In this document: positions 8,601 through 52,878 of the stretch, one piece after another | Position numbering within the stretch: position 1 is the stretch's first letter | How the letters are laid out: every line of letters begins with the position of its first letter | Assembly (NCBI GenBank): GCA_964199315.1 | Contig: OZ116699.1 | Location: 27,094,001-27,158,000 of the forward strand | Reading direction: 5' to 3' | Length of the DNA stretch: 64,000 bases | Source of the DNA: Orbicella franksi | Taxonomy: Eukaryota | Notes under the pieces: generated by a model | What the model saw: only the letters and a program-made list of their open reading frames with translations | The model's database searches: none | Told to the model about the DNA's origin: nothing | Position numbers and translations under genes: made by a program

Positions 8601-9994
8601 TGCAAGGAGAGCTCAGGAGAAATACTCTTTCTCATACTACTCTTCCAACACCAGCATAAGCTGCAGTGTTTTGAATAGAATCACTTGGCTGGGCACAGAT
8701 TCTACCTTACCTTCACTGTCAAATGTCTCCCCTAGTAGGGTTGAAACTTTTTTGAAAAAATTTGATTACTTATTTTTAAATGTGTAGGTTGTAAAATATC
8801 TATTAGGCCATGAGGCCACCTACTAGTCCATGCAAGCACTTACAACTGTTGTGGCTTGCCAAAAGAGTTTTGCTATTCAAGTTTGCTACCACCTTCTACC
8901 AATAGACCCTCTATAACGATGGCATCACAAATCCACTCAAAGATGACTTTGAACAGAAAGTCAGCATAGACCGGTACTCGAACCCAGGGCCTTCATGGAC
9001 TCCATGGAGTAATGTTGTAATCAGCTGGGCTATTATGTGTTACAAACCTACACAGTAACTAAATATACATAAACGTATCTGGTTTGCTAGTATGCTGAGC
9101 TTGAAGGTTTTTGTCTTACTAATGCACAAAAGACATGCTTTGAAAGCATGAATTTTTTTATACATTTATATGTACCTATGAGGAATTGAACTGAGCTAAA
9201 AAGAAATGTTGACTTTTATTGATTTATTATTAGTTCATTATTGCAACAAAGTGACTAAATCTGCTATGATCATACTGTTAATCTTCTTACTTAAATTTTA
9301 CTCACAATTTGTTGTCACATAGTGTAAGCTCTTAGGCAAACAAAATTAGCAAGTACACATGGATAAAAGAGAAATAATAAAAAAGCCAGTTTCTAAAAGC
9401 TTATGATGATTGAAATAGGCTAAAAGCATAGGGTTTGATGTTTTCCATATCATGAAGGCTATGATTAGTAACAATATTGTCAAAATTGAAATAGTGGAAA
9501 AAGTGCAGCTTGTTATTCGGCAAACTTTATAAGCTTTACATGCTAATTATACACTTACTAAATTTTTGATACTGCAGTGGTGGTAGAATTTCAAATAAAA
9601 AAAGCTACAGGTATAACAGTGAGTACATAAATGATTCAAACTTTTACTGCATGTTAATATCATCTATCATCTACTGTAGTTGGCTAGCAAAAAAAACATG
9701 GAAGATTTTTTCAGTTTTCATAGATCTTGAAGCAATGCAGATAAGAATAGTCTCCAATGCTGAATTGAATGAAGCAAATTTTATAGTAAGAATGCATCTC
9801 AAGCACTGATGCTTTAAAGTAGCAAGGATTAAACTTTCTTGAAACTAGAAATGTGCCTAATATAAACTTTCTGATGGTACATACTTGTACTTAATGCTGA
9901 CTTGGTGATAATTTTGTCCAAAAATTGCCAGTAATAATTGAAAATTGATAATGAACCACACTTCCCTCTTATGCTGGATTTTATGTCTTCACTC

Positions 9995-11927
9995 TTAGTT
10001 TTGTAAAAAAGCCCCGACAATGCGAAGTGAAGGCTTTTGCTCACCAGGAGCACGTCTGGCATCTGCCGGTGCAACAAGATCTTTGCCAGCGAGCACGTCT
10101 CTTTTGTACTTGCCAGTCAACCCATCCTTGTGCACAAGGTGCACCTCTAGGTTCTGGGGGTCGTACACAGCACTGTCATCTGCTCTGATTGGAATGGAGA
10201 TGTGAGCCATACTGCGTCCCTGGCAGTTAGCACAGTTGCTTCTGTTCCACCTGGACAGAACACCACCCTGTCCCAGATAGTAGAGCTTTCCAGAGGCTCT
10301 GTAGAACACTTGCAAAAGGAAAGATCCTGAAATCTTGTCCTTGTTGACATCCTTGACCTGAACAAAATTTTGGAAGTTGATAGACACTCCCTTGATTGTA
10401 TTGTAGGTAGGACCAGTTGGGCATATGGGGATGTGACAATCAGGAAAAGCTTGAGGTGCCTTCATTGCGGAGACAGCAGATGAAGTGAACTGAGTACGGT
10501 CAAATATCATTCGGAGGCGTTGGCGACCAGTTGCAGCAGGGGCAGTGGCAAGTATGTTTAAGGTTTCCTTTCCCAGCTTATCAAGAATGTCTTGCCAGGG
10601 TGTGCTTGGCTTATCTAGCAGGGAGACTTTCTTCACTTCTTCAGGTTCAGGCCAGGTAGCTTGATCCAGTGAGCCAATGGAGTAATCATAATCAAGCTGA
10701 GAGACAATGTTGATGCAATCCCTGGATGTTCGAGGGACACCGTACTCATCTTGAAACGGGTAAAGAATGGTCTTCTTGTTTAGCTTTTGGCCCCATGTCT
10801 GGTTGGGAGTAGCACCTTGGTTGCTGTTCGAGATGCCTTGGTCCTTTTCATCACTGTTGTCAATGGTGAATGTGTACGGATCTGTCTTCTTATGCTTCTT
10901 CTGCCAGACCCAAAGCATGCGATCAATGTTGCAGTGATGCAAGAAGAAAACTGGGTCGAACGAAGCCACCTCATTTGCACCCATGTCACCATTTGCTCCC
11001 TCAATTGGACCATTCCAGCTGAAGTTGCCCTGGGCATCCCGTTTGACGCTTCCATCTTCATTAGTGTCCGGTTGTGTGAATCCACCTATGGCCAAATGTA
11101 GGTCATTATGTGGCTGCTCAAGTGAAACATCAGGACTTTGAACAGATGACGTGTTTGAGAATGGATTGTAATCTGTTGTATCAAGGCAATCTTCCAACTG
11201 CTCGGCAACACCTCTACGATTTCTACCACCATTACTTAGCCAGCCGATGATGTTTGCTTGCAAAAGGGATTGTGCTGTTTCATTTCTCCCATCGATCTTG
11301 TCGTTGTGATCTAAAGCGGCCGCCTTAGCTTCATCAGGACTTCGGATGCCCGAGTATGGATACCTGCAGGTGTCATAGCCAGCTTCTTTCTCATAAAACT
11401 GGCTATTTTCATCACTGGTTGAAACAACATCTTTGATGGGCACGGGCAGCTTGAATTTGAACAGGGGATTTGGCACATACTCTCCATCAATGTGCACATA
11501 CTCGGCTGTGACTATGTGGGGCAGACCCTCCGACTTGCTTTCTTTGCTTGATGCATCCCAGTAGTGCAATGCCACTCGTTCTTTCCCCCTTTCCAGTACT
11601 GACTGCAGTGCCTGTTCTAAACGAAGGCAATAAAATCGGTGCCAAAATGGGAAGAGAACATTGCCATGTTGGCAGTAGCCACCCCACGTTGTCGGTTCTT
11701 GATCCTCATCCTTACCAGTGCCACTGGAGTCCTCCTCACTCTCATCCCCACACAGTGCAACTCGACGTTCTTTGAATGGCATGCCATGGTATGATGCTAT
11801 TGACCAGAATGAGTTCGGATTAGTTGGTGGCAGTTCCTGAATTAGTTTCCATGCCTTGAGAAAGTCATTCCTCTTCTCAGCATTACATTTCTTATCTAGT
11901 TCACGAAGAGACAGTCGAATAACATTT
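9995..11927 (-). CDS. Tyrosinase (type-3 copper protein), fungal/bacterial MelB type; main coding exon
   Basis: CuA motifs YHGMPF, GGYCQHGNVLFPFWHR; CuB motifs PHNDLH, SFDPVFFLHHCNIDR; YxY (YDY) core-end motif; C-terminal VLSRW..CANC. Acceptor CTTTCTATTTCTCTTACAG precedes 11927; stop at 9995. Confidence 0.95.
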
Positions 11928-12319
11928 CTGTAAGAGAAATAGAAAGTCAAAGTGAGGATAATAGGTACTTGTTTTCTCAACCGATAGTAAAGTGCTCATG
12001 CAAAGATGAATTCAGTGGCTCAACTCATTGTATGGCAAATTACTCTGAGCATCAATATTTGAGCAACTGAAAGCATGTATTCAATCACACAGGGTTAGAT
12101 AAGATGGCACCAGAGTGATTGAGTGGTCAAACGATTGGCAGTAAGAATGTTTTTAACATATGTAGACATCGCCCTCTTTTTCGCAAGGATTGGTCAACAC
12201 AGTAAAAAATATAAGCGCTGTTTGATCATGAAACATATGCACATAACGGGAGTTTGTATGATCTTTTAACACCAGGAAAAAAATGCATCAACATTAATAA
12301 AAGATTCAAAAACCATTGG

Positions 12320-14093
12320 GGGAATAATGGAAGATGATGCTGGATTGCCCAAAATCGTCAAGCAATGGTCGCACATTGTTGTACACAATGGTCCTGGGCA
12401 ATGCTCAGCGTGCTAGGCAATGCCAGGCAATGCCAAGCATTGCCTCGAGCATTGCAAGCATTTACTAAATTTTGGTCGGAGTATAGCTCTGAGCAATGCT
12501 CAGCGCTGTCTGAAGCATCAACATTTCCACTGATTTTAACCTGTGCTTCAGTCAATGCTTGACATAACACCAAGCATTACTTTAACCTTGGTGTCTTAAT
12601 CTTCTGGTTGGTTTGCCTTCTACACTGCTCCGAGCATTGATGAGCATTGACTTTCTACTGCTCCCCACCATCAAGTACACAGCATGCTTGCCAATGTTCT
12701 GAGCATCAGAGGTGTGCGACAGACAAGCTTTACCTGCCTGTGTCCAGCCAAACACTCAAACTGTCCATCTGTGTCCAACCAAATGATTTAGTCTAATATT
12801 TTCGTCTACCTATAGCTGTCTATGCATTTCACATGTCTGTCCATACCCTCCCACATAATTTTGCAGTCTGGTCTGTCTATGTCCGTCCAATACATATCCT
12901 ATGTCCATCCATGTCTGTCCTGCATATTTCCATCAGCATTATTGTCCGCCCATTTCTGTTCAATAGATTTTTAATGTTTGTCCATGTCCACCCGGCTAAT
13001 TGTCATCGGTATTTTTTGTCTGTCTGTGCATGTTTCAAATGACCAATTTGTCTGTCCATGCCCGTCTGGATGGGCAGATAGACGTCTGTTGCACACCTCT
13101 GCTAAGCATTGAAAAGCATTACCAAACGTTGACAAGCACATAATGTTATTTGTGAGTGTCCAATTTTCCTGGTGTAACAAAAACCCCTTCCTCCCACCCT
13201 GATTAGATAACCCCCTTCCCAAGTCCATCTTTGTTCTTGTGCTACACCTTAGCCGATTCTCCACATTCACACAGAAAAAAAAATTAATTCAAAATGTCTT
13301 CCTGTTTCATGCACCTGGCTCCTAGTTTGCATCTTATCCAAGTTTTATTGCCAATTAAATAAAACACACAAATGCTGCTCATGACAGGTATAAGAAAAAA
13401 CATTGAAAAAAGACTGTAGCATTCCTCCATCTTGCCTCTGCATAGGCCATATTGATCTTATGACCATCATATCTAAATGCTTGGAGTAGTGCATACATTT
13501 TGCTACCTATCTAACAAAGGAATTTGAAAAAGTTTCAAACTAGTGAGTGAGGAATGAGCATTATTTTGTGCATCCTATGCAATCCTTGAGCATTTACTTC
13601 AGTGAGTGCAATTGGTGGATCAAAGTTGCAGAGCCAAACAAAGGTGGGGTAGGGAAGGGGGTTTTTAAGGTATGGCAGGAGGAAAGGATTTTTGTTACAC
13701 CCAAAAAATTGATTAGTCCCAAATAACATTATATGCTTGTCAATGCTGGCAGTTTTGGCCAAAAGGTTGCATACATGGCTGTGTGGAGTAGTAGAAAGTG
13801 TAGAAGGCCATGGAATCACGAGATTGAAACACCTACACTAAAGTGAAAGTAATGCTCATAGCAATATCAAGCATTGACTGAAGCACCGGCGAAAATCAGT
13901 GGAAATTTTGATGATTAAGACAGTGATGAGCACTGCGCAGAGCATTACTCTGTGCAAAGGTCAATGCTCTGTGCAGTATTGACAGCAATGGACAGCAATT
14001 ACTCGCAACTGAAGCATTGCTGAGCATTGCCCGGAAACATTTCCCAGGACCATTGCGTGACCATTGCATGAACACTGAGCGACCATTATGCCA
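12320..14093. mobile_element. ~1.8-kb non-autonomous element with long subterminal inverted repeats, inside the tyrosinase intron
   Basis: 12320-12560 is an imperfect reverse complement of 13860-14093 (e.g. TTTCCACTGATTTT..GCTTCAGTCAATGCTTGA versus TCAAGCATTGACTGAAGC..AAAATCAGTGGAAA); CAATGC/GCATTG subrepeats; CATTGG on both flanks. Confidence 0.7.
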
Positions 14094-14258
14094 CATTGGG
14101 GAAACCTAATAGTGCAAGGCTCTTGATTGCTTGTTTCGTGCTGGATTTTTTCGTTGTGTAGGTGAATGTGTACAAGCTATTGGCACACAAGTTCAATGGT
14201 GTAAACTAAATGTACAATAAAGAAATCAGAGTCAACATCAAATTAGCCCAATACTCAC

Positions 14259-14284
14259 GCTTTCTTTTTATCACTGCTTGACAT
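14259..14284 (-). CDS. First coding exon of the tyrosinase (MSSSDKKK + GC)
   Basis: Exon 14336-14259 bounded by TTTTCTTTTGCAG and GTGAGT; the ATG at 14284 leaves a phase-2 end that matches the phase-2 start of the main exon, giving a 652-aa ORF. Confidence 0.75.
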
Positions 14285-14949
14285 GTCGCTTCAAGTTTCG
14301 TGACCTTCTGGTGCAGCCTCTACACTAAAATATGCCCTGCAAAAGAAAAATTACTATTTTCAGCTGAACTCTCTGTTTGTTTTAGTACTCTATTGATATA
14401 TTGAGACACATAATGCAATTTGCATACACAAACATAAAAAAATGTTAGTGCTTTCAATCAGCACTCATGTATGTACATGTAGCTGCTGAAAAGTAGTTTA
14501 CAAACACACCGAAACAAAAATCACGACACAAAACTAAAAGTCGACTTCATATGACCATTCCAGTTGGTGAGAGCAGCTTCATCTTTGTTAAGAAGAAAAC
14601 ATGTCTGAAAAATATTTGCACAAAAGCCCAGGAATATTTTTCACACAGAACCACCAGTATTTTGCAGTCTGTTCTCATCTGTTTTCAAACCTGCGATTGT
14701 TATGAAATTATGAGCTGGTTAAAAAAGTGGTGCAAAATCTGGCTAACTCAGAAAATTAAATTCCTGGTAAAATGTTCTAATTAGCATAACTAACTAGCTT
14801 TCCTTTGCACAAACATTGTTTTATACTGATTCACCATCTCATTTTGCTGAAAAATTATTGCCAAATTTAATTTGATGACAATATTATTCACATCATCAGA
14901 AAATGAACTTGTTCCTGTGCAGTTATTAAGTTGCTCTAGAAACACATCA

Positions 14950-15265
14950 ATATGTTGATTTGGAGGTTGATAAATGCATCCGATTATCTAAAACTGCAAG
15001 TTGATGAAGATGTCCCCCGGCATCATACGCCATGTGAATACAGATAAAAATAGCAGATTTATAATGGAAGAAGAGGGTGGACAATTGCACTCATTCTAGG
15101 ACTTTTACCGATGCCACGTTCTTAGGCAATTTACATAATTATGAGCCTTGCAGCCATTCCAGAGACTAACCCAACAATGTAAGTCACTGAAGGCAAAATG
15201 TCCTTAGAGTAAAGATCCTGAAGGATGCTCCTAAGGAGAAATCTTGATCTCTTGAGTAGGTCTAT
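14950..15265 (-). pseudogene. 3' fragment of a CR1/L2-type LINE reverse-transcriptase ORF
   Basis: Minus-strand peptide DLLKRSRFLLRSILQDLYSKDILPSVTY..AAR resembles the post-RT region of CR1/L2 ORF2; degenerate. Confidence 0.55.
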
Positions 15266-16093
15266 TTTTTTAGCAAAGGCTTTTTGAATTCCAACAAGTG
15301 CCAATCTCGTACCCAGAGTCCTCTTTGGTCAGCGAGCAGTTGCCCAGAGAGACTCTGGGAAAATGGACTCAATTTTACCAGAAACTGTGGTAATTGAGTC
15401 TTAGTGAGCGAGGTTGAAAACGGGAAACGGAAGTTGTTGTGTTAAATAGCATGTTGTTTTTCAAGATTTATTTTTGAAAAGTTCATGGCTAGGAAAAACA
15501 AAAGTGGTAAAAATGAGCACAGCCATTCAGATAAAAAAGGTAAAACTGAAAGGTTTTTTTACATTTCAAATCTCCCTCCTAGGCCATCGATATAGTTGGT
15601 TCCAGCTCTGATTTGGCTAAGTTGCTGTCAGACACCTATTGTTATGCAAGTCACCCATGAGAAAGTAAAATACAATTATTTTCACTTTCCTAGAGTCCCT
15701 CCAGGGCACCACCTGCTGACCAAAGAGCTTGAGGACTCCGACTACGAGAGGGAACCAGATTTGTTTTGCATTTACTATCATCCCTAGGAGGCATGACTTG
15801 GCCATTTTAATTTCAGAGCTACCAATGTTCTACCAATGTAGATCGATGGCATATGATCCAGATGGCTTCTGGTCATTCACACTTTTCTCACTTTTGCCGG
15901 GGTGGGGATGGAGCCAATTGATTAGGCACCATTCATACATTTCGTAGTATGCTGTGTAGTATCGTATGTTAGGACTGGGCTCTAGGCCCATTGCATGCTG
16001 GGCCCACGCAGGTCCAGTTACCATTGTCGTTGTAGTTTCGTAGCAAGTATGGCAGCCATAGTCTATTAAATGGGTGACGAGGAACAACCAACA

Positions 16094-17222
16094 ATGCCAG
16101 ACAAAGCCAACACTAATCAGAAAGGAAAGTCAGGAGTTCTTGCCAGCGTACGAGGAAGTGTGGGTGCTTTCAGTTTGAGTGGTGAACCAGGGCTACGCAA
16201 GAAAACATGGAAGTTATGGAAAGACCACTTCGAACGAGCCACTCGATGGATGGCAGTCAATGATACCGACAAGCTAGACTTACTGTTATTAGTAGGAGGA
16301 GAAGAGCCCCAGAAGCTACTCCACTTCCCGAACAGCCCACAGATTACAAATTGCACATCGAACTGTGGACCAACACTTCAAGGAATATCGCAACAACACT
16401 TTGGAGTTGTACAAGTGGTTCAACACAGAATGGTCACCCGACATGTACTTCGATGACTTCAAGACGAAGTGCAGAGAGCAAGCGCTTCATTGTGATTTCC
16501 CCATCACACTGGACAATGCAATCATCATGATGACTGTGGTCAAAACCAGCAACGTCAAGCTTTGGAATGAAATAATTCGGAAAAATGGAGACTTGAAATC
16601 GGTAAGAGAAACAGTTAAAGCTTTTGAGATAGCAAGTGAAGGCAGTCAGATGATGAAAAGCACAGAGGAAGAAAAAAGCCAAGATAAGGGCGATCCAGGG
16701 TTAAAACGAGTTTACACACCAGGACGGTTCAGCATGAGAAATAAAGGGCCAAGCTGTACCGCTGACCATTCGCAGGCACAGGCCAGACTGCCTTGCTCCA
16801 AGTGCGGGAATGAGGCACATGCCAACAAGGATCCATGCCCAGCTACTGGAAGGAGATGCCTCAAGTATGGGCGTCCGAATCACTTTGCCCGCATGTGCAA
16901 GGGTGCAGCCAATGACAGGAAAGACAAGCGAACCAACGCAGTGGAGTGTGAGCAGCAGACCAACAAACACCGTGGGTCTCAAGAAGAGGGGTTTTTAAAA
17001 GATGTGTACTTGTACCAGCTGCAGGAAGGAAAATCACGGAATCCAACTGTCGCCATTCACGTCAATGGCATTCCCATCAGTTTACACTTGGACACGCAGG
17101 CTGACATCACAGTAGTTACTGTAAAGCACTATGGAAAGCTTCAGGCCAACTGTCCCCTACAGCAAACCAGCGTAGCAATCAGGAGCTGGAGAAGGGAAAG
17201 GCCCGGTGCTACCCGTGGTTAG
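16094..17222 (+). pseudogene. gag: gag and aspartic protease of the Gypsy element (frameshifted)
   Basis: Zinc-knuckle remnants CSKCGNEAHANKDPC and CLKYGRPNHFARMC; protease motif LHLDTQADITV. Confidence 0.85.
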
Positions 17223-17331
17223 AAAATTCACCGCAACACTCGCTCGGGGAGAAAAGGAGATAGCAGAGCCAGTGTATGTAGTTAAGGGTTAAGGCGACAC
17301 AGCACTGCTAAGCTGTGGGACCGTTGAACGT

Positions 17332-20238
17332 ATGGGTATTGTGGAGTACCACCTGGACCTGACCAAGAGCACACCACTGCCAATCATGGGGGAGACATGG
17401 CAAGTGACCGTTGACCTAGTCGAAGAGTACAAGAATGTGATCTCGGGTTTAGGAAAGTTGAGAGGAATCAAGGTGAAATTGCACATGGACTCAGACGCAA
17501 AAGGCGCCGTGCAGAAACAGAGAAGAATATCTCTACCATTCAAAAACAAATTTGATGAGATTCTGGACAAGTGGGAGCAAATGGATATCATAGAAGATGT
17601 TGGAGACGAACCAACAGAATGGTGCAGCAATGTCGTCCTCACTCTTAATGGAAAGCTTCAGGCCAACTGTCCCCTACAGCAAATGGGGCCAAGTATTTCT
17701 CTCACTTAGACATGAACGATGGATACATGCAGCTGGAGTTGGTCAAGGAAAGCAGAAAGCTTACCACGTTTTACATGCATAGAGGGCTGAAACACTTTAA
17801 AAGGTTGCATTTCGGGGTCAACAGCGTGGCAGAGATCTTTAACGAGGAGGTTCGCAAGATCGTAGCACAAGAGCCAAATGCTGCCAGCATTTATGATGAA
17901 ATACTTGTCTTCGGCGCAACGCCCAAGCAGCATGATGAAGCACTCAGGCACATATTCAAGCTGTGGCGCGAGCATGGGCTCACACTTGGCCTGAAGAAGA
18001 GCAGGCTCAACCTCCAAGCTGTGAAGTTCTTTGGAAAGGTGTTCTCAAGCGAAGGAATATCACCAGACCCAGATAAAGTAGCAGCCCTGAAGGCAGCAGG
18101 TCCCCCACAGTCAGCAGCAGAAGTACACTCCTTTCTATTCTTTGCTGGAGCAAACGCAGACTTCATGGAGGGATTTGCACAGGCCACTGCACCGCTGAGA
18201 GAGCTACTCAAGGTGAATGCTAAGTTCCAGTGGACACCAGAGTGCCAAAGGTCATTTGATTGGGTCTGGGAAATACTGACAGACGAAACAGTGATGGCAT
18301 ACTTTGATCCACAATGGAAGACAAGGCTGAAGACTGATGCAGGACCAGGTGGAATGGCAGCCACCATGAAGCAGTATGACCCCGAGGCCAAGCAATGGTG
18401 ACCTGTCACTTATCGATCAAGAGCATTCACTGACACTGAGAGCAGATACTCACAGCTAGAGAAGGAAGCCAAAGCTGTGGAGTGGGGTATCTTTGCCAAT
18501 CAGATATACCTTTATGGCATGGGAGACACATTTGAGGTTGACACCGACCACAAACCACTGGTACCGCTGCTTTCGGGCTACAGGACAACTGCACCACTCT
18601 GTTTAGAGAGGATACGTGTCCGCCTACAAGGCTTCAACTATCACCTCAATTGCGTACCCGGAAAGGAGGGAGCAGAGAACAATGAAGCAGACTACGCAAA
18701 AGAGCCAGGCCAGTAAAACCCAAGCAGAATTTGAGCTAAGAGAGACAGTGGAAGAGCTCAAGAAGGATATCATTGCTATTGTGAAATCTTCAGTACCTGA
18801 AGCAGTCACCAGGCGGGAGCTGCTTGAAGAAATGTGCTCAGACACTGAACTGTCGGACTTGAAGGAAGCCATAGCTAGAGGATACTTCACGGCGCAAGAG
18901 AAGAGAGCCCTCGGGCAGCAGTACAACTCCATTTTCACCGAGTTGGCTGTTTTAGGAGGGCTGGTAGTCCAAGGTCCAAGAATTGTAGTTCCCAGGACTC
19001 TCTGAAATAAGGTAGTCAAGCTTGCGCACGAAGGCCACCAAGGTATCACCAAGACCAAGGAGTACCTGTGTACCAAAGTGTGGTTTCAAGGGCTAGACAA
19101 CATGGTGGAGGCGCACATCCAGCACTGCCACCCGTGCCAAGTGGTAAACGTGTCACCGGAGCGAGAGCCCTTACGCATGACACCCATGCCCAGTGAGCCT
19201 TGGAAAGATGTTGCTGTAGACTTCTGGGGCCCCATCCATGCCGGAGAGTATCTGTTGGTTACGGTGTGCAAGGAGTCTAGATGGGCGGAAGTAGAATTTG
19301 TCACCTCCACCAGTGCCAGGGCTGTGATGCCAAAGATGGATAAAACCTTTGCCTCGTTGGGCATACCAGTGTCGGTAAGCAGTGACAATGGACCTCTGTT
19401 CAATAGCCAGGACTTCAGTGACTTCAGCAAGTACTTGGGCTTTCGTCATGAGCGAAAGACGCCACTGAATCCACAAGCCAATGCAGAGGCTGAGCAGTTC
19501 ATGAGAGTACTGAAGAAGCTGTACCAAATAAGCAAGTTGACGGGATCGAATTTCAAGCAGGAGGTATACCGATTCCTTAGTGCCTACAGAGCAACTTCTC
19601 ATTGTACCACTAAAATTGCTCCGCCAGATCTGATGTATCCCGGTTGCAATTTCCACACCAGGCTTCCCATTGGAGTAATTCCTTGTAAAGATAGCTTTGA
19701 AGAACTGTTCCAGAGGGATCTTGAGAAGAAAATGCAAATGAAAGGGTACGCAGACAACAAAAGGTATGTCAAACCTTCTGACATACAGGTGGGAGACTCT
19801 GTACTAGTCCGAAAGGAGGCAATCAACAAGGCCACACCTGCCTATGAGGCAGAACCATTACGGGTGCAGTGCAGGAAAGGCACCAGGGTGGTAGCCAAAA
19901 GGCCAGATGGCAGCTCCATCACAAGGACCACAACTCACTTTAAGAAAGTTCCCTTCAGATCGATCGAGGAAGCCCACAGGTGGTCCAGTGCAGAATGGCC
20001 AGCAGAGCCTGTCAATGAGTCACCACCAAGCACCGGAGAAGATGGGCCCTCTGGTTTGAAACAGACTGATGGAAGCATGATTGGGACGGGCGCCAATGAG
20101 TCCATCCCTGCTGATGCTGCCTTAACAGCCGGGTTGACATCACCACTTGCCCGGGATCAGGGACCAAGGAGAAGTGAGAGGCACCGAAAAGACACTGATA
20201 CGTATTTAAAGGAAAAGTACCCAGACTCCCAGCTATAA
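17332..20238 (+). pseudogene. pol: pol (RT, RNase H, integrase) of the Gypsy element, with several stops and frameshifts
   Basis: RT KRLHFGVNS and YDEILVFG (decayed YxDD); RNase H TDAGP and DTDHKPL; integrase HCHPC, VDFWGP, SDNGP, QANAEAE. Confidence 0.9.
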
Positions 20239-21519
20239 TGCTGAAGTTAGATAACTGTTCCGGGTCTATAATGGACTTTAGACACTGACTTCTTTCATGA
20301 TAAGTTGTTGTTTATTTTTCTGGGTGTCACCCCATAGAACTATCTGTAAGCAAGGGGGGAATGTAGTATTGTATGTTAGGACTGGGCTCTAGGCCCATTG
20401 CATGCTGGGCCAACACAGGCCAGGTTACTGTTGTTGTTGTAGTTTCGTAGCTAGTATGGAAGCCATAGTCTATTAAATGCTGGATTCAGTTGCGCAATAG
20501 CCTTCTTTGCAGATTGATTTATCCAATAAATCGTCGTCGAATCATCCACAACATACCCAGGTGTTTGCCAGAAAAAAAGTGGTAATGTAAAACACGCGAC
20601 TCACCTGTCTCTGGTAGGGTAGTCTGAGTAGGTTGCCCCAAAATGTGTGGGGTACTCAAGAAACAAATTATTCCTATCAAGAGTCCCATTCAAATTACAA
20701 AGGCTTCTTTTCAGTCCTGTCGTTATTGCGCAACTGAATCCAGCATTATATTTGGAATACCCAAAAGATCCTCAAATGCTCATTTTATCCATTTACAGAC
20801 CAGTGATTGATACAATTCAGTCTTGTTTCGTATCAACTCTGACACAAGAAATTGATGGAAATTGATTGATTCGCTCCCTTGTTTCTTTCTGTTTTTTTGT
20901 TTGTTTGTTTGTTTGTTTTTCTTTTGCATTTTATTCCTTTTACAAGAGATGTAAAGTTGGTCAAGTTGGTCATGGTTCCAGTTATAACAAGATCTGTCAG
21001 AAAACATCCATATTTTTCTTAGTCCTTATCTTATAACCTTCACATCGATGTAAAGTTTGCCGCAGTTTGTTAATATAAGTGCACAAATGAATGATTGATA
21101 TGGAAATTGTTAACCCCGGTTGATAAAATGAAGAGATGATATTTTTCCAATAGTGACTCAGACATACTTGGAAGTATCTGAGTGCTCCTTTGCACTTGGC
21201 TTTTTTCTGAGCAGTCCTGAATCCTGAGTCACGGCAGAAAAAAAATATCACCTCTTTATTTCTGACATTGTTAAATTTCTAAGAAAGAGATTCAGTCAAA
21301 GAACAAGTCATGTCAACAACAAAGGCACTTTTTACACAAGGACGCCTTGAATTCCACTGATGATTTGACCATGTTCTCAAATTATGGCATCATCATCTAC
21401 AACACACCGAGGGTCAAGAACAGAACTCTGGAAATATTCAGGCACTCTTTACGATTGTCATTTAAGTCTTAAATAAGTATATTATACAATGCTCTTAAGA
21501 AGCTGTCCAAGAAAAATTC

Positions 21520-24500
21520 AGTAGTATAGAAGTTGAGGGTACGAACGTAAATTTTTTTAATTTTCACTTGTACAATCAACTTCAATACTACTTTCCATTT
21601 TATGGAATTTTTTCAACGATTCCACAGAATTTTACAATCTACATCTTTCCAAATTCCAGAAAACTATATGGAATCATAATACTGCTTCATGAGGGGGGTA
21701 TTAATGCATGATTCCACACAAAAGCAATGCTTCATGAGGCGGTCTCCGTGGTGTGATTTCATAGTGTGACATTTGTTGAAAAACAGGAAAAAATTAGCAT
21801 AGTGTGGCTTTCTCACAAGCAGGAAGTTATAAGATGGGATTTTTCCCTAATTTTAAATACAGTTTTTGAACCAATCATGAAGCTCACATTTTTCCTTCAC
21901 AATTGTGAAATTTTTCAGTGAAAAAATTTTTATTTGTGACGCCTAAATTGAAGGGGGTTTATCAAGCATGATCTCTTCCTGTGACAACATTATCAGGTTT
22001 TTATGTTTTTGAAACATTACATTTTATTACAAGTCAGGTTCCATACATTTTATAATTTTCTGGAAATTCAAAAATGGGGGGTAAAAAAGCAATGGATTCA
22101 TGAGTCGGCCTCATGGTGTGGTAGGAACATAAAAATATAATCTTATTCAAGAGTATATGAACAGTGAAATAGCTAAAGTAATGAAGGAATCAATGATCAT
22201 TTTACTTGAAAAAAATGAATAGATGCAAAATATAAAAGGCTTAATTTTAGTGTTATGCTCAACAATAGTTATTCTAATGAAATTATTCATGATGAACTCA
22301 AGGATGTGGATCAGATTTTTTGCTTGCTTTGAGATAACAAAATTGGTGAAAGCAACTCATGTCAGGAACCATGCTGTGAAAATATTCAACTTGACGAAAA
22401 CTATATGAAGATCCTCAAAAATATATAGTATATGAACAGTGAAATACCTAAAGTAATGAAGGAATCAATGGTCATTTTACTTGAAATAGAACAAATTGGT
22501 GCGAAATATAAAAGGCTTAATTTTAGTATTATGCTCAACAATAGTTATTCTAATGAAATTATACACAATGAACTCAAGGATTTTTTGCTTCCTTTGACAT
22601 AACAAAATTGGTGAAAGCAACTCATATAAGAAACCATGATCTGAAAATAATTTCAGGAAAAATATGAGGTTGTTCGTGAAAATGTGGTTCAGTAGACAGA
22701 TATTAAATAGCTCCAAAGAAGTTTATAACTGCCTTTAGAAACCAAGCATCTCAAAAATTAATGACCAAAATTGTGTTGTGATTAGCTTGCCTAGCGTCAC
22801 GGTCACATAATGAGACTCTTCTGGAAAAATCAATTCATCAAACAAGAGTAAAGAAGGCTAAGGCTTCATCCACGAAAAAGCCAAACTTACAACAACTCCA
22901 GATTCGTCCATGAGAATGCAAACACATCCCTTGCGGCTAAAGTATTCCAAATAGATTCTACTTTTACATACTGCAAAAATTTGATCCTTCCTCTATTAGT
23001 AAAATCATTACCTTCAATTGTGTCGTCTTGTTTCCAGCCTCAATTTCTGATGTGAATTGTAGATCTAAGAATAAAGATGAGCGAAATAAATTCAATACAA
23101 CGTTTTGATGTCAAGTAATAACGAAAAAACTTACAGTGACTACTTTATACAAACGGAGGGTGATAGAGTAAATTAGCATATCCAGTGTTCTATTTCACAC
23201 GTAGGCATCTTTAAAATGTTAAGTAAATACTTTTGCGTGGATAGAGTGCAATTGCGTGTTCAGGCTTGGCTTCTTGAATTTCATAGATAACACCTCATTA
23301 ATTAAACAATGCTGTCGGACCACAATAATCAAGGTGATTTGTTGTGGGCAGCCTGTGGGATAATGGATACAGTGATAAAACAGAAAGCCTTAAACCCTTG
23401 ATTGATCAAGCCCTGCTAGAATCACAAGGCAGCGTTTTTATAATTATAATAACCTCTTAACTACTATCCTTGGGTTTACTCTACAACTAATATGAGTTCT
23501 GGAAAACGTAGGAAACGCTGGCGTACCCCATCTACAATCAATAACAGATCATCTGTAGGTGAATTAACCAAGGTGTAGGCGAGAATGAGTGTAGCCGACT
23601 TGACCGGATACCTTCCTTAATTACAAGTGAACTACCAAGACTAAATACAATTGCTCTCTGTGCATTCCCTGTGACCAAACTAACCTACCAAATGAAAATT
23701 AACACTTTTTGAAGCCGCTTTGCTTAATTCATGTGCAAAAAAGAACTGGTGATCACATAACTATGCGTGAGCCTGCGTGGTATGCTTGTTGTGAACAATA
23801 CATCTTTGTTTGAGTAATTACATGTATTGTGAAGCAAGATTTCCACCAACATTATGAGTCAAATGAAGATCCAGTGGTGGTTAGGAAATTCAGTAAAACT
23901 ATGGAAAATCTCAGAAAACAATGTAATGTTGAACTAGTGACTGATGAAAAGAAACTATTAAAATTAGCCTCAAAACTGACTTATATTAGCAGCAATATAT
24001 TCAATGAAAATCTGGTAGCAGTGCATAAGATCAAAGAATTTTTAACTCTCAAAACACCAGCTTATGTAGGAATGTGTATTCTTGATCTTTCCGAGACATT
24101 GACGTATGATTTTCACCACAACTATATTAAGTCCAAGTATGGTGACAAAGCTAACTTGCTATTCACAGACACAGACTCATTAAGATACAAAATCAAAGCT
24201 GATGATGTGTATCAAGACTTCTGTAAGATAATGATAAATTCGACAATAACAACTATGAAGAAGATAGCCCTTACTTTGATAAAACCAACAAAAAGTAATT
24301 GGCAAATTCAAAGAGGACGCTGCTGGTGTTCCAATAACTAAATTCGTTGGTTTGAGAAGTAAACTGTATTCATACGTAAAAGACAATGACAAAGGCGGTA
24401 AAAACAGCTAAAGGAATAAAAGAAGAATGTCATCAAAAAGAATGTCAAACATGAAGACTATAAAGACATGCTATTTCATGCGAAGCAAATGCATCATGCG

Positions 24501-25107
24501 ATGAAAACTATCCAAAGCAATAATCATCAACTTGGAAGCTATGAGCTTAATAAAGTATCACTAAGCTGCTTCGACGACAAACGATACAAGTTTACTAGAG
24601 GATGGCAGAAATTCATTCGCTTATGGCCATTATAAAATCCAACTGTAAATGAACTTCACACAAAACAAAATTTCACTAAAAAACTTTCACAATTGTGAAG
24701 TGAAAATATGAGCTTTTTGATTGGTTCAAAAAGTATTTAAAATTAGGGAAAAATCCCATATTACAAGTTCCTGTTTTTCTAAAAATCCCACGCAATGCAA
24801 ATATTTCCTGTTTTTCCAAGAATGTCATGCTGTGGAGATCACGCTACAGAGAGAGATGCCAGGAGACCCCCTCATGAAGCAGTGCTTTTTTACCCCCCTT
24901 GAAGAGCAGTTTTCATAAAATGGGAAAAATAGATGGTTTCCAATTATTCATAATATCTAAACGTACTTTTTAGTTTACGAAACATATAGATTACAAAAAT
25001 TTTGGAAACATACAGATTGCAAATTTCTTTTGATTCCCACAAAATTATTTCCATGAAATGGAAAGCACTATTGAAGTTACGTTCGTACCCTCAACTTCTA
25101 TACCACC
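21520..25107 (+). mobile_element. Internally deleted Polinton/Maverick relic
   Basis: Left end AGTAGTATAGAAGTTGAGGGTACGAACG, right end CGTTCGTACCCTCAACTTCTATACCACC; imperfect TIRs of ~420 bp (21520-21940 versus ~24660-25107); 6-bp TSD AAATTC at 21514-21519 and 25108-25113; contains a PolB remnant. Confidence 0.9.
23888..24648 (+). pseudogene. C-terminal remnant of a protein-primed family B DNA polymerase (Polinton pPolB), copy 1
   Basis: KTMENLRK, AYVGMCILDLS, LLFTDTDSL (motif C), FVGLRSK, KGIKK, CFDDKR, AYGHYKI; frameshifted. Confidence 0.9.
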
Positions 25108-26613
25108 AAATTCCCAAACATTTGTTTAGAAACGTAGAAGTTTATATAAGTGCCTTTAGAAACCAAGCATCTCAAAAATTAATGACTGATATTGTGTTTG
25201 CCATGGATCGATGTCACGTAATGCGACTCTTCTGGAAAATTCAATTCATCGAACAAGGGAAAAGAGGGCTAAGGCTTCATCCACGAAAAGCCAAACTTAC
25301 AGCAACTCCAGATTCGTTCATAAGAATCCAAACACATCGCTCGCAGCTAAAGTACTCGGAATTGGTTCTATTTTTAAATACTGCATAATTTGATCCTTCC
25401 TCTATTTGTAAAATGATTACCTTTGATTGTGTTGTCTTGTTTCCAGCCTCAATTTCTGATGTAAATTGTAGATCTAAGAATAAAGACGAGCAAAATAAAT
25501 TTAATACAAAGTTTCGATGTCAAGTAATAAAGAAAAAACTTACAGCGACTAAAACAAAGCTTACTGAGTACAGCACATCACCGAAGGGAAGTGCTCTTAC
25601 AATGAACAATGGTGCATTTATACCTAGACGTGATTATGGGTGTAACCAATAGAAAGCTGCCATGATGCAGATCATATTGTGATAAGACTAGACAATCTTT
25701 CACAACACTTGACACTATAACACACTCAAGGATGTCACTCGATCTCTGCCGGGGTGAAGCATAATTTGACAGTGTTCTTATATAGTTAAATACAATAAAC
25801 AACTGTTTCCGAGGTTTGTATGTCACGTTCCATTAACTGCATGTTACTGCTTGTGCCGTACAACTTTCTTTATACAAATTAAAGGGTGATAGAGTAAATT
25901 AGCATATCTAGTGTTGTACTTCATGCGTAAGCATGTTAAAAATGTTAAGTAAATACTTTTGCATGGATAGAGTGCAATTGCGTGTTCAGGCTTGGCTTCT
26001 TGAATTTCATAGATAACACCTCATTAATTAAACAACGCTGTCGGACCACAATAATCAAGGTGATTTGTTGTGGGCAGCCTGTGGGATAATGGATACAGTG
26101 ATAAAACAGAAAGCCTTAAACCCTTGATTGATCAAGCCCTGCTAGAATCACAAGGCAGCGTTTTTATAATTATAATAACCTCTTAACTACTATCCTTGGG
26201 TTTACTCTACAACTAATATGAGTTCTGGAAAACGTAGGAAACGCTGGCGTACCCCATCTACAATCAATAACAGATCATCTGTAGGTGAATTAACCAAGGT
26301 GTAGGCGAGAATGAGTGTAGCCGACTTGACCGGATACCTTCCTTAATTACAAGTGAACTACCAAGACTAAATACAATTGCTCTCTGTGCATTCCCTGTGA
26401 CCAAACTAACCTACCAAATGAAAATTAACACTTTTTGAAGCCGCTTTGCTTAATTCATGTGCAAAAAAGAACTGGTGATCACATAACTATGCGTGAGCCT
26501 GCGTGGTATGCTTGTTGTGAACAATACATCTTTGTTTGAGTAATTACATGTATTGTGAAGCAAGATTTCCACCAACATTATGAGTCAAATGAAGATCCAG
26601 TGGTGGTTAGGAA

Positions 26614-27375
26614 ATTCAGTAAAACTATGGAAAATCTCAGAAAACAATGTAATGTTGAACTAGTGACTGATGAAAAGAAACTATTAAAATTAGCCTCAAA
26701 ACTGACTTATATTAGCAGCAATATATTCAATGAAAATCTGGTAGCAGTGCATAAGATCAAAGAATTTTTAACTCTCAAAACACCAGCTTATGTAGGAATG
26801 TGTATTCTTGATCTTTCCGAGACATTGACGTATGATTTTCACCACAACTATATTAAGTCCAAGTATGGTGACAAAGCTAAATTACTATTCACAGACACCG
26901 ACTCATTAACATACAAAATCAAAGCTGATGATGTGTATCAAGACTTCTGGTAAGATAATGATAAATTCGACAATAACAACTATGAAGAAGATAGCCCTTA
27001 CTTTGATAAAACCAACAAAAAGTAATTGGCAAATTCAAAGAGGACGCTGCTGGTGTTCCAATAACTAAATTCGTTGGTTTGAGAAGTAAACTGTATTCAT
27101 ACGTAAAAGACAATGACAAAGGCGGTAAAAACAGCTAAAGGAATAAAAGAAGAATGTCATCAAAAAGAATGTCAAACATGAAGACTATAAAGACATGCTA
27201 TTTCATGCGAAGCAAATGCATCATGCGATGAAAACTATCCAAAGCAATAATCATCAACTTGGAAGCTATGAGCTTAATAAAGTATCACTAAGCTGCTTCG
27301 ACGACAAACGATACAAGTTTACTAGAGGATGGCAGAAATTCATTCGCTTATGGCCATTATAAAATCCAACTGTAA
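26614..27375 (+). pseudogene. pPolB remnant, copy 2
   Basis: Near-identical to copy 1, about 2727 bp downstream; in-frame TAA after YQDFW. Confidence 0.9.
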
Positions 27376-29341
27376 ATGAACTTCACACAAAACAAAATTT
27401 CACTAAAAAACTTTCACAATTGTGAAGTGAAAATATGAGCTTTTTGATTGGTTCAAAAAGTATTTAAAATTAGGGAAAAATCCCATATTACAAGTTCCTG
27501 TTTTTCTAAAAATCCCACGCAATGCAAATATTTCCTGTTTTTCCAAGAATGTCATGCTGTGGAGATCACGCTACAGAGAGAGATGCCAGGAGACCCCCTC
27601 ATGAAGCAGTGCTTTTTTACCCCCCTTGAAGAGCAGTTTTCATAAAATGGGAAAAATAGATGGTTTCCAATTATTCATAATATCTAAACGTACTTTTTAG
27701 TTTACGAAACATATAGATTACAAAAATTTTGGAAACATATAGATTGTAAATTTCTTTTGATTCCCACAAAATTATTTCCATGAAATGGAAAGCACTATTG
27801 AAGTTACGTTCGTACCCTCAACTTCTATACCACCAAATTCCCAAACATTTGTTTAGAAACGTAGAAGTTTATATAAGTGCCTTTAGAAACCAAGCATCTC
27901 AAAAATTAATGACTGATATTGTGTTTGCCATGGATCGATGTCACGTAATGCGACTCTTCTGGAAAATTCAATTCATCGAACAAGGGAAAAGAGGGCTAAG
28001 GCTTCATCCACGAAAAGCCAAACTTACAGCAACTCCAGATTCGTTCATAAGAATCCAAACACATCGCTCGCAGCTAAAGTACTCGGAATTGGTTCTATTT
28101 TTAAATACTGCATAATTTGATCCTTCCTCTATTTGTAAAATGATTACCTTTGATTGTGTCGTCTTGTTTCCAGCCTCAATTTCTGATGTAAATTGTAGAT
28201 CTAAGAATAAAGACGAGCAAAATAAATTTAATACAAAGTTTCGATGTCAAGTAATAAAGAAAAAACTTACAGCGACTAAAACAAAGCTTACTGAGTACAG
28301 CACATCACCGAAGGGAAGTGCTCTTACAATGAACAATGGTGCATTTATACCTAGACGTGATTATGGGTGTAACCAATAGAAAGCTGCCATGATGCAGATC
28401 ATATTGTGATAAGACTAGACAATCTTTCACAACACTTGACACTATAACACACTCAAGGATGTCACTCGATCTCTGCCGGGGTGAAGCATAATTTGACAGT
28501 GTTCTTATATAGTTAAATACAATAAACAACTGTTTCCGAGGTTTGTATGTCACGTTCCATTAACTGCATGTTACTGCTTGTGCCGTACAACTTTCTTTAT
28601 ACAAATTAAAGGGTGATAGAGTAAATTAGCATATCTAGTGTTGTACTTCATGCGTAAGCATGTTAAAAATGTTAAGTAAATACTTTTGCATGGATAGAGT
28701 GCAATTGCGTGTTCAGGCTTGGCTTCTTGAATTTCATAGATAACACCTCATTAATTAAACAACGCTGTCGGACCACAATAATCAAGGTGATTTGTTGTGG
28801 GCAGCCTGTGGGATAATGGATACAGTGATAAAACAGAAAGCCTTAAACCCTTGATTGATCAAGCCCTGCTAGAATCACAAGGCAGCGTTTTTATAATTAT
28901 AATAACCTCTTAACTACTATCCTTGGGTTTACTCTACAACTAATATGAGTTCTGGAAAAAGGTAGGAAACGCTGGCGTACCCCATCTACAATCAATAACA
29001 GATCATCTGTAGGTGAATTAACCAAGGTGTAGGCGAGAATGAGTGTAGCCGACTTGACCGGATACCTTCCTTAATTACAAGTGAACTACCAAGACTAAAT
29101 ACAATTGCTCTCTGTGCATTCCCTGTGACCAAACTAACCTACCAAATGAAAATTAACACTTTTTGAAGCCGCTTTGCTTAATTCATGTGCAAAAAAGAAC
29201 TGGTGATCACATAACTATGCGTGAGCCTGCGTGGTATGCTTGTTGTGAACAATACATCTTTGTTTGAGTAATTACATGTATTGTGAAGCAAGATTTCCAC
29301 CAACATTATGAGTCAAATGAAGATCCAGTGGTGGTTAGGAA

Positions 29342-30103
29342 ATTCAGTAAAACTATGGAAAATCTCAGAAAACAATGTAATGTTGAACTAGTGACTGATG
29401 AAAAGAAACTATTAAAATTAGCCTCAAAACTGACTTATATTAGCAGCAATATATTCAATGAAAATCTGGTAGCAGTGCATAAGATCAAAGAATTTTTAAC
29501 TCTCAAAACACCAGCTTATGTAGGAATGTGTATTCTTGATCTTTCCGAGACATTGACGTATGATTTTCACCACAACTATATTAAGTCCAAGTATGGTGAC
29601 AAAGCTAAATTACTATTCACAGACACCGACTCATTAACATACAAAATCAAAGCTGATGATGTGTATCAAGACTTCTGGTAAGATAATGATAAATTCGACA
29701 ATAACAACTATGAAGAAGATAGCCCTTACTTTGATAAAACCAACAAAAAGTAATTGGCAAATTCAAAGAGGACGCTGCTGGTGTTCCAATAACTAAATTC
29801 GTTGGTTTGAGAAGTAAACTGTATTCATACGTAAAAGACAATGACAAAGGCAGTAAAAACAGCTAAAGGAATAAAAGAAGAATGTCATCAAAAAGAATGT
29901 CAAACATGAAGACTATAAAGACATGCTATTTCATGCGAAGCAAATGCATCATGCGATGAAAACTATCCAAAGCAATAATCATCAACTTGGAAGCTATGAG
30001 CTTAATAAAGTATCACTAAGCTGCTTCGACGACAAACGATACAAGTTTACTAGAGGATGGCAGAAATTCATTCGCTTATGGCCATTATAAAATCCAACTG
30101 TAA
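29342..30103 (+). pseudogene. pPolB remnant, copy 3
   Basis: Near-identical to copy 2, 2728 bp downstream. Confidence 0.9.
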
Positions 30104-31465
30104 ATGAACTTCACACAAAACAAAATTTCACTAAAAAACTTTCACAATTGTGAAGTGAAAATATGAGCTTTTTGATTGGTTCAAAAAGTATTTAAAATTA
30201 GGGAAAAATCCCATATTACAAGTTCCTGTTTTTCTAAAAATCCCACGCAATGCAAATATTTCCTGTTTTTCCAAGAATGTCATGCTGTGGAGATCACGCT
30301 ACAGAGAGAGATGCCAGGAGACCCCCTCATGAAGCAGTGCTTTTTTACCCCCCTTGAAGAGCAGTTTTCATAAAATGGGAAAAATAGATGGTTTCCAATT
30401 ATTCATAATATCTAAACGTACTTTTTAGTTTACGAAACATATAGATTACAAAAATTTTGGAAACATATAGATTGTAAATTTCTTTTGATTCCCACAAAAT
30501 TATTTCCATGAAATGGAAAGCACTATTGAAGTTACGTTCGTACCCTCAACTTCTATACCACCAAATTCCCAAACATTTGTTTAGAAACGTAGAAGTTTAT
30601 ATAAGTGCCTTTAGAAACCAAGCATCTCAAAAATTAATGACTGATATTGTGTTTGCCATGGATCGATGTCACGTAATGCGACTCTTCTGGAAAATTCAAT
30701 TCATCGAACAAGGGAAAAGAGGGCTAAGGCTTCATCCACGAAAAGCCAAACTTACAGCAACTCCAGATTCGTTCATAAGAATCCAAACACATCCCTCGCA
30801 GCTAAAGTACTCAGAATTGGTTCTATTTTTAAATACTGCATAATTTGATCCTTCCTCTATTTGTAAAATGATTACCTTTGATTGTGTCGTCTTGTTTCCA
30901 GCCTCAATTTCTGATGTAAATTGTAGATCTAAGAATAAAGACGAGCAAAATAAATTTAATACAAAGTTTCGATGTCAAGTAATAAAGAAAAAACTTACAG
31001 CGACTAAAACAAAGCTTACTGAGTACAGCACATCACCGAAGGGAAGTGCTCTTACAATGAACAATGGTGCATTTATACCTAGACGTGATTATGGGTGTAA
31101 CCAATAGAAAGCTGCCATGATGCAGATCATATTGTGATAAGACTAGACAATCTTTCACAACACTTGACACTATAACATACTCAAGGATCTCACTCGATCT
31201 CTGCGGGGTGCCATGCATAATTCGATAGCGTTCTTACATAGTTTTAAAAAAGAGGGAAAAGAGGGCTAAGGCTTCATCCACGAAAAGCCAAACTTACAGC
31301 TACTCCAGATTCGTTCATAAGAATCCAAACACATTCCTTGCAGCTAAAGTATTCGGAATAGATTCTCTTTTTACATACTGCATAATTTGATCCTTCTTCT
31401 ATTCGTAAAATGATTATCTTCGATTGTGTCGTCTTGTCTCCAATCCAGTGTCGTCTTGTTTCGAT

Positions 31466-52655: not shown

Positions 52656-52878
52656 AAAGGAATCGGCGCACGCCAAGAGAACTCTTTGTCATTCGCCTTA
52701 TAAATGTCTTTTGCTGCTGCATTTTATTGTCATTTTATGTCCAAAATTTAATACGGCCACCCCGTTAATACAGCCACGTTTTTGTGACCTGTTGATGACC
52801 GGATTAACGATGTTCCACTGTGCTTACAACGCAGGCGTCCCAAACTCACGATTCCACGAATAGATCAAATATTACCCC

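Follow-up and report, generated by a model that had tools for sequence, protein, structure and literature searches.

A lid-bearing, BtTyr-like tyrosinase gene in the coral Orbicella franksi: a probable member of an old animal clade

In the 12-type scheme for polyphenol oxidases (PPO) of Meitil et al. 2025, type k, which holds bacteria, fungi and red algae, falls within the lid- and thioether-bearing 'type 2', and the HisA1-HisA2 spacing is 16-24 residues in types g-l and 7-9 residues in types a-f (PMC11803259). In BtTyr, a tyrosinase of the bacterium Burkholderia thailandensis, an extension at the C-terminus regulates activity, a thioether is present, and the activity controllers are Asn and Leu (PMC10526336). 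The prophenoloxidase activity of coral extracts is assayed by treating them with trypsin and following the oxidation of dopamine (PMC4136782), and the gene behind this activity is unsettled (PMC11579526). Here we describe a tyrosinase gene on the minus strand of a 64,000-nucleotide stretch of the genome of the stony coral Orbicella franksi (assembly GCA_964199315.1, contig OZ116699.1, positions 27,094,001 to 27,158,000; hereinafter the window, in whose coordinates all features are given). An earlier note, made from the sequence alone, had presented this gene as a fungal/bacterial-type, MelB-like tyrosinase and a candidate for horizontal transfer. In our assessment, it is very probably a single-copy host gene for a cytosolic, latent BtTyr-like tyrosinase, a member of an old animal clade that predates the cnidarian-bilaterian split, with no recent transfer involved.

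Gene structure, protein family and predicted fold

RNA confirms that the tyrosinase locus is a three-exon, spliced and polyadenylated gene with the following layout.

23012..23046, minus strand: 3' end of exon 1, a non-coding leader; RNA contig ends match here; donor GT at 23011-23010
14337..23011, minus strand: intron 1, in the 5' untranslated region (5'UTR); 8675 nt as measured from the nearest leader copy; GT..AG, with AG at 14338-14337
14259..14336, minus strand: exon 2; 5'UTR, ATG at 14284-14282, codons 1-8 and 2 nt of codon 9 (MSSSDKKK-A)
11928..14258, minus strand: intron 2; 2331 nt, phase 2; donor GT at 14258-14257, acceptor AG at 11929-11928
9230..11927, minus strand: exon 3; coding 11927-9998, stop 9997-9995, 3'UTR of ~750 nt; 3' end approximate

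The catalytic and C-terminal regions together occupy one 1933-bp coding exon (9995-11927) within the open frame 9995..11980 on the minus strand, as the earlier note had read it; to this, a 3'UTR of ~750 nt, extending to ~9230, can now be added. RNA contigs are unbroken from 11927 to past 9300, and AATAAA motifs lie near 9215-9230, by the 3' end of the exon. Upstream of the conserved N-terminus, the large open frame contains no in-frame ATG. The end of exon 2 (GC/gtgagt, the slash marking the exon boundary) is spliced to cag/A at 11927, yielding a protein of 652 residues that begins MSSSDKKKA-NVIRLSLRELDKK. The 11927/14259 joint, which skips 2331 nt and which the earlier note had proposed to check by RNA sequencing (RNA-seq), is exact in contigs assembled from four polyA RNA-seq runs. 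The coding sequence indeed has a single intron, after codon 8 (phase 2, 8 codons plus 2 nt). An additional non-coding exon and intron lie upstream. The exon 2 region (14259-14342) is covered by RNA contigs in all four runs, and 5' of 14336 these contigs carry 29 nt that are distant in the genome, an exact match to 23018-23046, where the sequence continues as TTGAAG/gtaatg. The run-on of an RNA contig from 14336-14342 into the leader contains one mismatch, which is accounted for by the junction TTGAAG/GGCAT. Because the 5' ends of the RNA contigs match 23018-23046, the gene has a non-coding leader exon and an 8.7-kb intron in the 5'UTR.

PF00264 is the only Pfam family detected in the protein (residues 55-362, E 1.1e-37; bit score 130.9, cut-off 22.6) and is matched over the full profile (1-214). 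The parts of the protein map to the window as follows.

10652..11926, minus strand: catalytic tyrosinase domain, residues 10-434 of 652, from PF00264 and the alignment to residues 10-411 of the BtTyr structure 5ZRD
11639..11788, minus strand: CuA site; His56, Cys94-x-His96 (thioether motif), His105
10934..11119, minus strand: CuB site; Glu279 (waterkeeper), His282, Asn283, His286, Leu287, Phe336, His339/His340
10367..10651, minus strand: animal-specific linker, residues ~435-529, with an R-x-x-F-D motif
9998..10366, minus strand: C-terminal beta-sandwich lid, residues 530-652; GSF 543-545, V-L566-SRW, C574-A-N-C577

All six copper-ligand histidines are present (His56, 96, 105, 282, 286 and 340, with 339). 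In an alignment of 115 sequences (A2), His96, 105, 282, 286, 339 and 340 are invariant and His56 is nearly so, and the lid residues G, S, R, C, N and C are invariant as well; the CuB residues fall in invariant columns both here and in a second alignment (A1) that includes 10 animal and 11 bacterial rows, and Cys94 and His96, the thioether motif read from the sequence, are invariant across the alignments. The counterparts of Asn283 and Leu287 are described as activity controllers 1 and 2, and that of the Glu as the waterkeeper (PMC10526336, Table 2); both controllers are identical to those given for BtTyr in the same source. The HisA1-HisA2 spacing of 39 residues, above the 7-9 of the short type and outside the 16-24 range quoted above, results from an acidic insert in corals.

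The motifs quoted in the earlier note are all found in the protein (starts in full-length numbering: CQHGN 94, WHR 104, TCRYPYSG 195, FSNT 265, GANGDMG 319, SNQGATP 377, GSF 543, LSRW 566, CANC 574). Pfam and hydropathy also agree with its statement that a signal peptide, a Cys-rich or epidermal growth factor (EGF) region and a transmembrane helix are absent: the N-terminus is charged (mean Kyte-Doolittle value of -1.33 over 30 residues), neither a signal peptide nor a membrane helix was found (maximum of 0.59 for a 19-residue hydropathy window), and no EGF-like or Cys-rich domain of Pfam matches the protein.

Among solved structures, BtTyr (5ZRD) is the best relative by sequence, with an E-value of 1.6e-88 compared to 3.2e-13 for MelB of Aspergillus oryzae and 1e-12 for the Agaricus bisporus enzyme AbPPO4. 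The alignment consists of two stretches, residues 3-427 (core) and 522-602 (lid), the latter matching 5ZRD residues 427-512. The fungal lid family PF18132 (Tyrosinase_C) gave no match to the protein at E up to 0.01, and the hemocyanin family PF00372 gave none either. An AlphaFold2 model built from 115 homologues has a mean predicted local distance difference test score (pLDDT) of 88.4 and a predicted template modelling score (pTM) of 0.92, shows the lid as beta strands, and drops to pLDDT 54-72 around residues 480-510, in the linker. In a Foldseek search with this model, 5ZRD ranks first (template modelling score, TM, 0.76 by target), followed by latent AbPPO4 (5M6B) and MelB (3W6W) with TM of 0.5-0.6; a search of the ESM Atlas returned only generic bacterial and ascomycete tyrosinase clusters.

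By these comparisons, the coral protein can be assigned to the BtTyr-like tyrosinases, that is, PPO type k within type 2. The earlier designation as a MelB-type pro-tyrosinase thus holds for the cytosolic character, the lid, the Cys-x-His motif and the CxxC, but not for the closest affinity (TM ~0.55 for MelB); 'MelB-like' appears to be a fair description of the expected working mode, and membership, judging from the sequence and the missing PF18132, is with the BtTyr group. Public databases already list similar proteins as 'tyrosinase', and the published classification includes the group; its animal members appear to be uncharacterised.

Distribution, phylogeny and alternative origins

Homologues with 70-91% identity are present in many coral data sets, including those of Acropora cervicornis and Montipora foliosa, and full-length homologues with 38-50% identity are encoded by Hydractinia (two tandem genes), Clytia, Aurelia, Sanderia, Lottia, the acoel Convolutriloba and the nemertean Lineus. 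The gene is thus not confined to one lineage, as a lineage-specific transfer would require, but spans Anthozoa, Hydrozoa, Scyphozoa, Mollusca, Acoela and Nemertea. Bacterial homologues are ~40% identical over ~65% of the length. The 8-residue peptide patterns of the query found no match among 185,579 bacterial and archaeal species genomes, and a profile scan of the same genomes yielded 234 loci from at least nine bacterial phyla, with 43% identity for the best bacterial tblastn match. Two features set the animal proteins apart in alignment A1: the ~90-residue linker with the R-x-x-F-D motif (10 of the 10 animal rows, none of the 11 bacterial ones) and CQH at the thioether motif, which is found in all animal and no bacterial rows.

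Phylogenetic analysis (IQ-TREE, LG+C20+F+G4 PMSF; 91 rows, 543 columns) identified a single branch that parts the 10 named animals from the 38 named bacteria, with support of 100/95 and presence in 100% of the bootstrap trees; quick-mode and FastTree runs agree with this split. Four animal phyla are represented on the animal side, by stony corals, hydrozoans and scyphozoans, a limpet, an acoel and a nemertean, along with a sequence from the brown alga Nemacystus. The scleractinian clade sits on a long stem branch (0.66). On the other side, the bacterial phyla are thoroughly intermixed and the branches are short. With mollusc hemocyanin units as the outgroup, whose branch is very long, the animal clade (100 SH-aLRT, stem 0.73) emerges from a polytomy at the base, outside the bacterial subgroups, and midpoint rooting likewise places it inside no bacterial subgroup. 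Because the base of the outgroup-rooted tree is unresolved on a very long branch, we draw no direction of transfer from it. The contention of the earlier note that the host had acquired a microbial gene is therefore not borne out by the tree: the phylogeny gave a broad metazoan clade, from Anthozoa to Nemertea, with no named bacterium inside and consistent with descent and loss, which is the outcome that the note had itself set beforehand as refuting transfer. Its companion statement that animal tyrosinases differ in architecture remains true with respect to the melanocyte type but was too sweeping, given that this animal clade shares the architecture.

The position of the coding intron adds a further line of evidence. 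In the coral, in both Hydractinia genes (P0050 and P0052) and in Lottia (P0049), a phase-2 intron lies at codon -6 before the Ser of SLREL(D). In Acropora and Montipora, the first exon of the annotated N-termini ends at the same Ala; a relative on a Tara scaffold (L096) has a phase-2 acceptor at codon -7, one codon off; and the Lineus gene, annotated as a single exon with an in-frame upstream ATG, is uninformative. The two paralogues of Hydractinia symbiolongicarpus (CM055236.1) are ~80% identical and lie 3.3 kb apart in the same orientation, P0052 and P0050 having N-terminal phase-2 introns of ~2 kb and ~4.2 kb. On this comparison, it is improbable that three lineages each took up a 5' exon separately with the boundary at an identical codon and phase. 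The shared intron, the clade and the linker therefore suggest that an intron-bearing gene was present in the common ancestor of cnidarians and bilaterians. By the same sequence comparisons, the gene would have been lost in many animal lines since that ancestor rather than acquired specifically by corals or cnidarians. The earlier proposal of domestication by gained 5' introns is accordingly correct in that such introns exist, although the coding one is common to coral, Hydractinia and Lottia.

The coral orthologues evolve fast. The dN/dS ratios are 0.75 (0.51-1.14) between the window and the orthologous locus in another coral assembly (L015), 0.93 (0.70-1.28) between the window and a Tara scaffold (L097), and 0.68 (0.53-0.90) between the latter two; the identity between the window and L097 is 86.4% in the coding sequence (CDS), 87.9% in intron 2 and 95.4% in the 3'UTR. 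There are no stops in the three coral CDSs, and all 8-25 gapped codons are in frame, compared to 26 gap openings in the alignment of intron 2; at 4.5% divergence, simulated neutral substitution leaves the frame open in 1.5% of the trials, and at 14% divergence in 0%. A comparison of 33 coral proteins shows 197 invariant sites out of 652; these cluster at the copper sites, with the copper-site blocks ~97% conserved, and the linker is the most variable part (majority-residue fraction of 0.46-0.74), where conservation drops to 46-65%. The kept frame and the conserved core together indicate that the gene is functional, with a fast-changing linker, lid and surface. In this comparison of three sequences, the rapid change outside the core could reflect either diversifying selection or relaxed constraint.

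In the 497-Mb assembly, the gene is the sole copy of its tyrosinase type and is located at 27.1 Mb of a chromosome-scale contig (contig 2). The same genome contains ~19 further PF00264 loci, most of which have the catalytic domain in one open frame. They are found on contigs 3, 4, 11, 12 and 15 and at 23.49 Mb of contig 2, with tandem clusters of five loci on contig 11 (9.77-9.99 Mb) and four on contig 3 (4.59-4.63 Mb), and some include Cys-rich N-terminal parts within the same open frame; presumably, these are secreted tyrosinases of the cnidarian type. The GC content of the exon is 47.5%, with 47.2% at third codon positions, where 13 host open reading frames (ORFs; 9 from other tyrosinases and 4 from elsewhere in the window) have 40-56%.

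These observations bear unequally on the alternatives to an old host gene. Corals harbour many microbes and dinoflagellates, and the exon, at 47% GC, stands out from surroundings of 35-41%, so that an assembly artefact, or a symbiont or contaminant contig with a microbial gene, has to be considered. However, the rise in GC is ordinary for host coding sequence and hence does not point to a foreign source; the transcript carries polyA and has lost GT-AG introns of 2.3 and 8.7 kb, in which host repeats and a Ty3/gypsy element reside; and the locus, deep inside its contig, is collinear with L015 and L097 from the 3'UTR across the coding exon, intron 2 and exon 2 into a part of intron 1, at 81-95% identity and with the flanks in the same order. 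Contamination or a chimeric join is thus excluded for practical purposes. Recent transfer from a bacterium or fungus into the coral, scleractinian or cnidarian lineage would fit a protein whose best solved relative is bacterial, which lacks the domains of animal-type tyrosinases and whose CDS is nearly intronless; we give it hardly any credence because hydrozoans, scyphozoans, a mollusc, an acoel and a nemertean all have orthologues built in the same way, no named bacterium falls inside the well-supported animal clade, Hydractinia and Lottia share the intron, the codon composition is host-like, and the scans of bacterial genomes came up with neither a peptide-pattern match nor anything closer than 43%. 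Nor are the non-coral animal sequences likely contaminants themselves, given that they reside on chromosome-scale contigs and contain introns. That the gene is a decaying or functionless relic, drifting neutrally in corals, could be argued from the dN/dS values and from a CDS no better conserved than the intron and worse than the 3'UTR, but this is very improbable: the 652-codon frame is open in the window, in L015, in L097 and in ~30 further coral clusters, whereas simulated neutral substitution rarely or never leaves it so; gaps are confined to whole codons, the copper-site blocks are conserved, and four polyA RNA runs yielded contigs of the gene.

The alternative that comes closest to the old-animal-gene reading differs from it only in the ultimate origin: a BtTyr-like bacterial gene might have entered a stem animal or an earlier eukaryote before the cnidarian-bilaterian split, gained the 5' exon, intron and linker, and then been inherited vertically with losses. 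The identity between animal and bacterial members, the latter from at least nine phyla, is 38-47%, about as high as that among the animal phyla; the CDS is close to a single exon, with the only coding intron just upstream of the start of the bacterial protein, the pattern expected of a bacterial ORF that captures a 5' exon of its host; animals have the gene in a patchy distribution; and type k is reported with bacteria, fungi and red algae (PMC11803259). Against such a transfer, neither rooting nests the animal clade in a bacterial subgroup, Nemacystus on the animal side hints at a wider eukaryotic history, and the single large exon is no evidence of foreign origin because other host tyrosinase genes share it; furthermore, because the bacterial phyla are intermixed with short branches, the spread among bacteria may have come later, and transfer could have run the opposite way. 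We consider an ancient transfer possible but, on balance, unlikely; candidates for the deep origin are such a bacterium-to-animal transfer, descent from early eukaryotes with losses, and spread from eukaryotes to bacteria. In a bolder form of the same idea, which we hold to be distinctly improbable, a lid-gated bacterial tyrosinase was captured by a stem animal and became an immune zymogen of corals, with the linker as a protease-sensing switch and with linker and lid under diversifying selection, due to which the CDS would diverge as fast as introns and UTR or faster. Several observations weigh against our own preferred reading, an old animal gene for a latent cytosolic enzyme. The animal side of the tree also holds 23 environmental or assembly rows, and the branching inside it departs from the species tree, with Lottia and the acoel joining anthozoans and scyphozoans joining the nemertean, so that old paralogy or poor resolution must be assumed. 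For a housekeeping enzyme, the coral orthologues would have an unusual dN/dS, at 0.7-0.9; the RNA evidence comes from assembled contigs rather than raw reads, in four runs of one study; latency and proteolytic activation are extrapolated from BtTyr and the fungal enzymes; and an immune-cell tyrosinase of Stylophora was described among secreted proteins in single-cell work (PMC8162421), although that protein may be encoded by one of the ~19 other PF00264 loci.

Repeats and other elements in the window

The leader exon is part of a tandem repeat (23012-31242) with a period of 2726-2728 and three full units of 97-100% identity, each of which contains the leader on the minus strand. Since three further copies, identical or nearly so, are located in this 2.73-kb repeat (25427-25455, 28154-28182 and 30882-30910), the leader copy in use is ambiguous. 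A promoter and a first exon inside a fragment of a tandemly repeated element are unusual, and the leader sequence was not found in the examined parts of L015 and L097. Its plus strand contains recurring ORFs (23829-24341, 26555-26953 and 29283-29681) with a 'DTDS' motif resembling that of DNA polymerase B, for which Pfam gave no match.

Intron 1 also contains a retrotransposon.

16070..20238, plus strand: Ty3/gypsy-type retrotransposon inside intron 1, with gag-like, reverse transcriptase, RNase H and integrase ORFs

The ORFs of this element are split over several frames and match RVT_1, RT_RNaseH_2 and rve of Pfam. About 6 kb of intron 1 in the window corresponds to only ~0.74 kb in L015, so that the insertion appears to be lineage-specific. 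Intron 2 contains MITE-like inverted repeats. In polyA RNA contigs from two of the runs (X2 and X3), 6-7 T>C differences on the plus strand (A>G on the minus strand of the gene) are clustered at 13141-13175, with further ones at 12838 and 13266; the cluster lies in one arm (13129-13235) of an inverted repeat within the intron, the other arm of which (13637-13743) is 78% complementary. This looks like A-to-I hyper-editing of an intronic hairpin, but strain differences are also possible.

Outside the gene, a satellite of 5.7 kb (52874-58547) consists of a 9/18-bp unit, (CAACCCTCA)n, with 86% matches and extreme strand skew (GC skew down to -0.89), and yields spurious ORFs of 1900 codons in several frames. 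An F-box ORF (51840-52655; PF12937, E 9e-8) is located directly upstream of the satellite, and a chromodomain ORF (62369-63073; PF00385, E 4e-10) close to the end of the window; each could represent a host-gene exon or a piece of a mobile element.

Predicted role and comparison with known systems

By analogy with BtTyr and the fungal enzymes, the coral protein is likely a latent prophenoloxidase. It would be made in the cytosol as an inactive precursor, with the CxxC of the lid helping to load copper. Work on MelB reportedly showed that the CxxC assists copper loading in that enzyme. The lid would then set Leu566, which aligns with the plug Leu466 of BtTyr and may touch the copper site in the same way, over the dicopper centre and hold the enzyme latent. 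After cell damage, or through an immune protease, the lid could be cut or displaced at the fast-evolving linker, freeing the site; being the least conserved and, in part, the least confidently modelled segment, the linker is the obvious place for cleavage. The active enzyme would hydroxylate monophenols and oxidise o-diphenols to quinones, leading to melanin, and Asn283 together with Glu279 should favour true monophenolase activity. A gene of this type would fit the trypsin-activatable prophenoloxidase behaviour of coral extracts.

Given that coral prophenoloxidase activity is a widely used immune read-out, a lid-bearing tyrosinase without a signal peptide is a concrete candidate for its source. 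The near-neutral dN/dS combined with the kept frame makes the gene worth a population-genetic look in studies of disease resistance. For screens aimed at horizontal gene transfer, the locus is a caution: a gene with a bacterial best match, nearly intronless and missing from model animals can be an old animal gene with losses. Here, the intron position shared across phyla quickly decided the question of transfer.

Among known systems, BtTyr (5ZRD/5ZRE) is the most similar. Like the coral protein, it is made without a signal peptide, contains the Cys-x-His motif, has Asn at HisB1+1 and Leu at HisB2+1, and ends in a lid of the form GSF...(V/I)LSRW...CANC in which Leu takes the place of an aromatic plug. 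The differences are that the identity is only ~40% and the coral gene is spliced and resides in an animal chromosome; that in the animal proteins an extra linker of ~90 residues separates the core from the lid and the thioether motif reads CQH where BtTyr has CNH; and that those of corals have, after HisA1, an acidic insert ~25 residues long. The long fungal PPOs of type l, namely MelB (3W6Q/3W6W) and Agaricus bisporus PPO4 (4OUA/5M6B), are likewise cytosolic zymogens with a core, a C-terminal shield and the same Cys-x-His topology, and the lid of MelB has the CxxC of the coral protein; in contrast to it, they show weak sequence similarity, have an aromatic plug (Phe513 in MelB) and form a separate clade in published trees.

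Arthropod prophenoloxidase is alike in outline, being a cytosolic type-3 copper zymogen that lacks a signal peptide, is released from the cell, is activated by proteolysis and produces melanin for immunity and wound sealing, but belongs to another type-3 copper family (PF00372), with an N-terminal blocking element and a Phe placeholder. Finally, the secreted cnidarian tyrosinases (type b; alpha-subclass of Aguilera et al. 2013, PMC3658974) and vertebrate TYR/TYRP (type g) share the PF00264 core with the coral protein. They differ from it by a signal peptide and by Cys-rich, EGF or thrombospondin (TSP) modules or a membrane anchor, the coral protein being without a targeting signal; moreover, cnidarian type b is listed as having no Cys-His bond and a HisA1-HisA2 spacing of 7-9, whereas the coral protein has the Cys and a spacing of 39.

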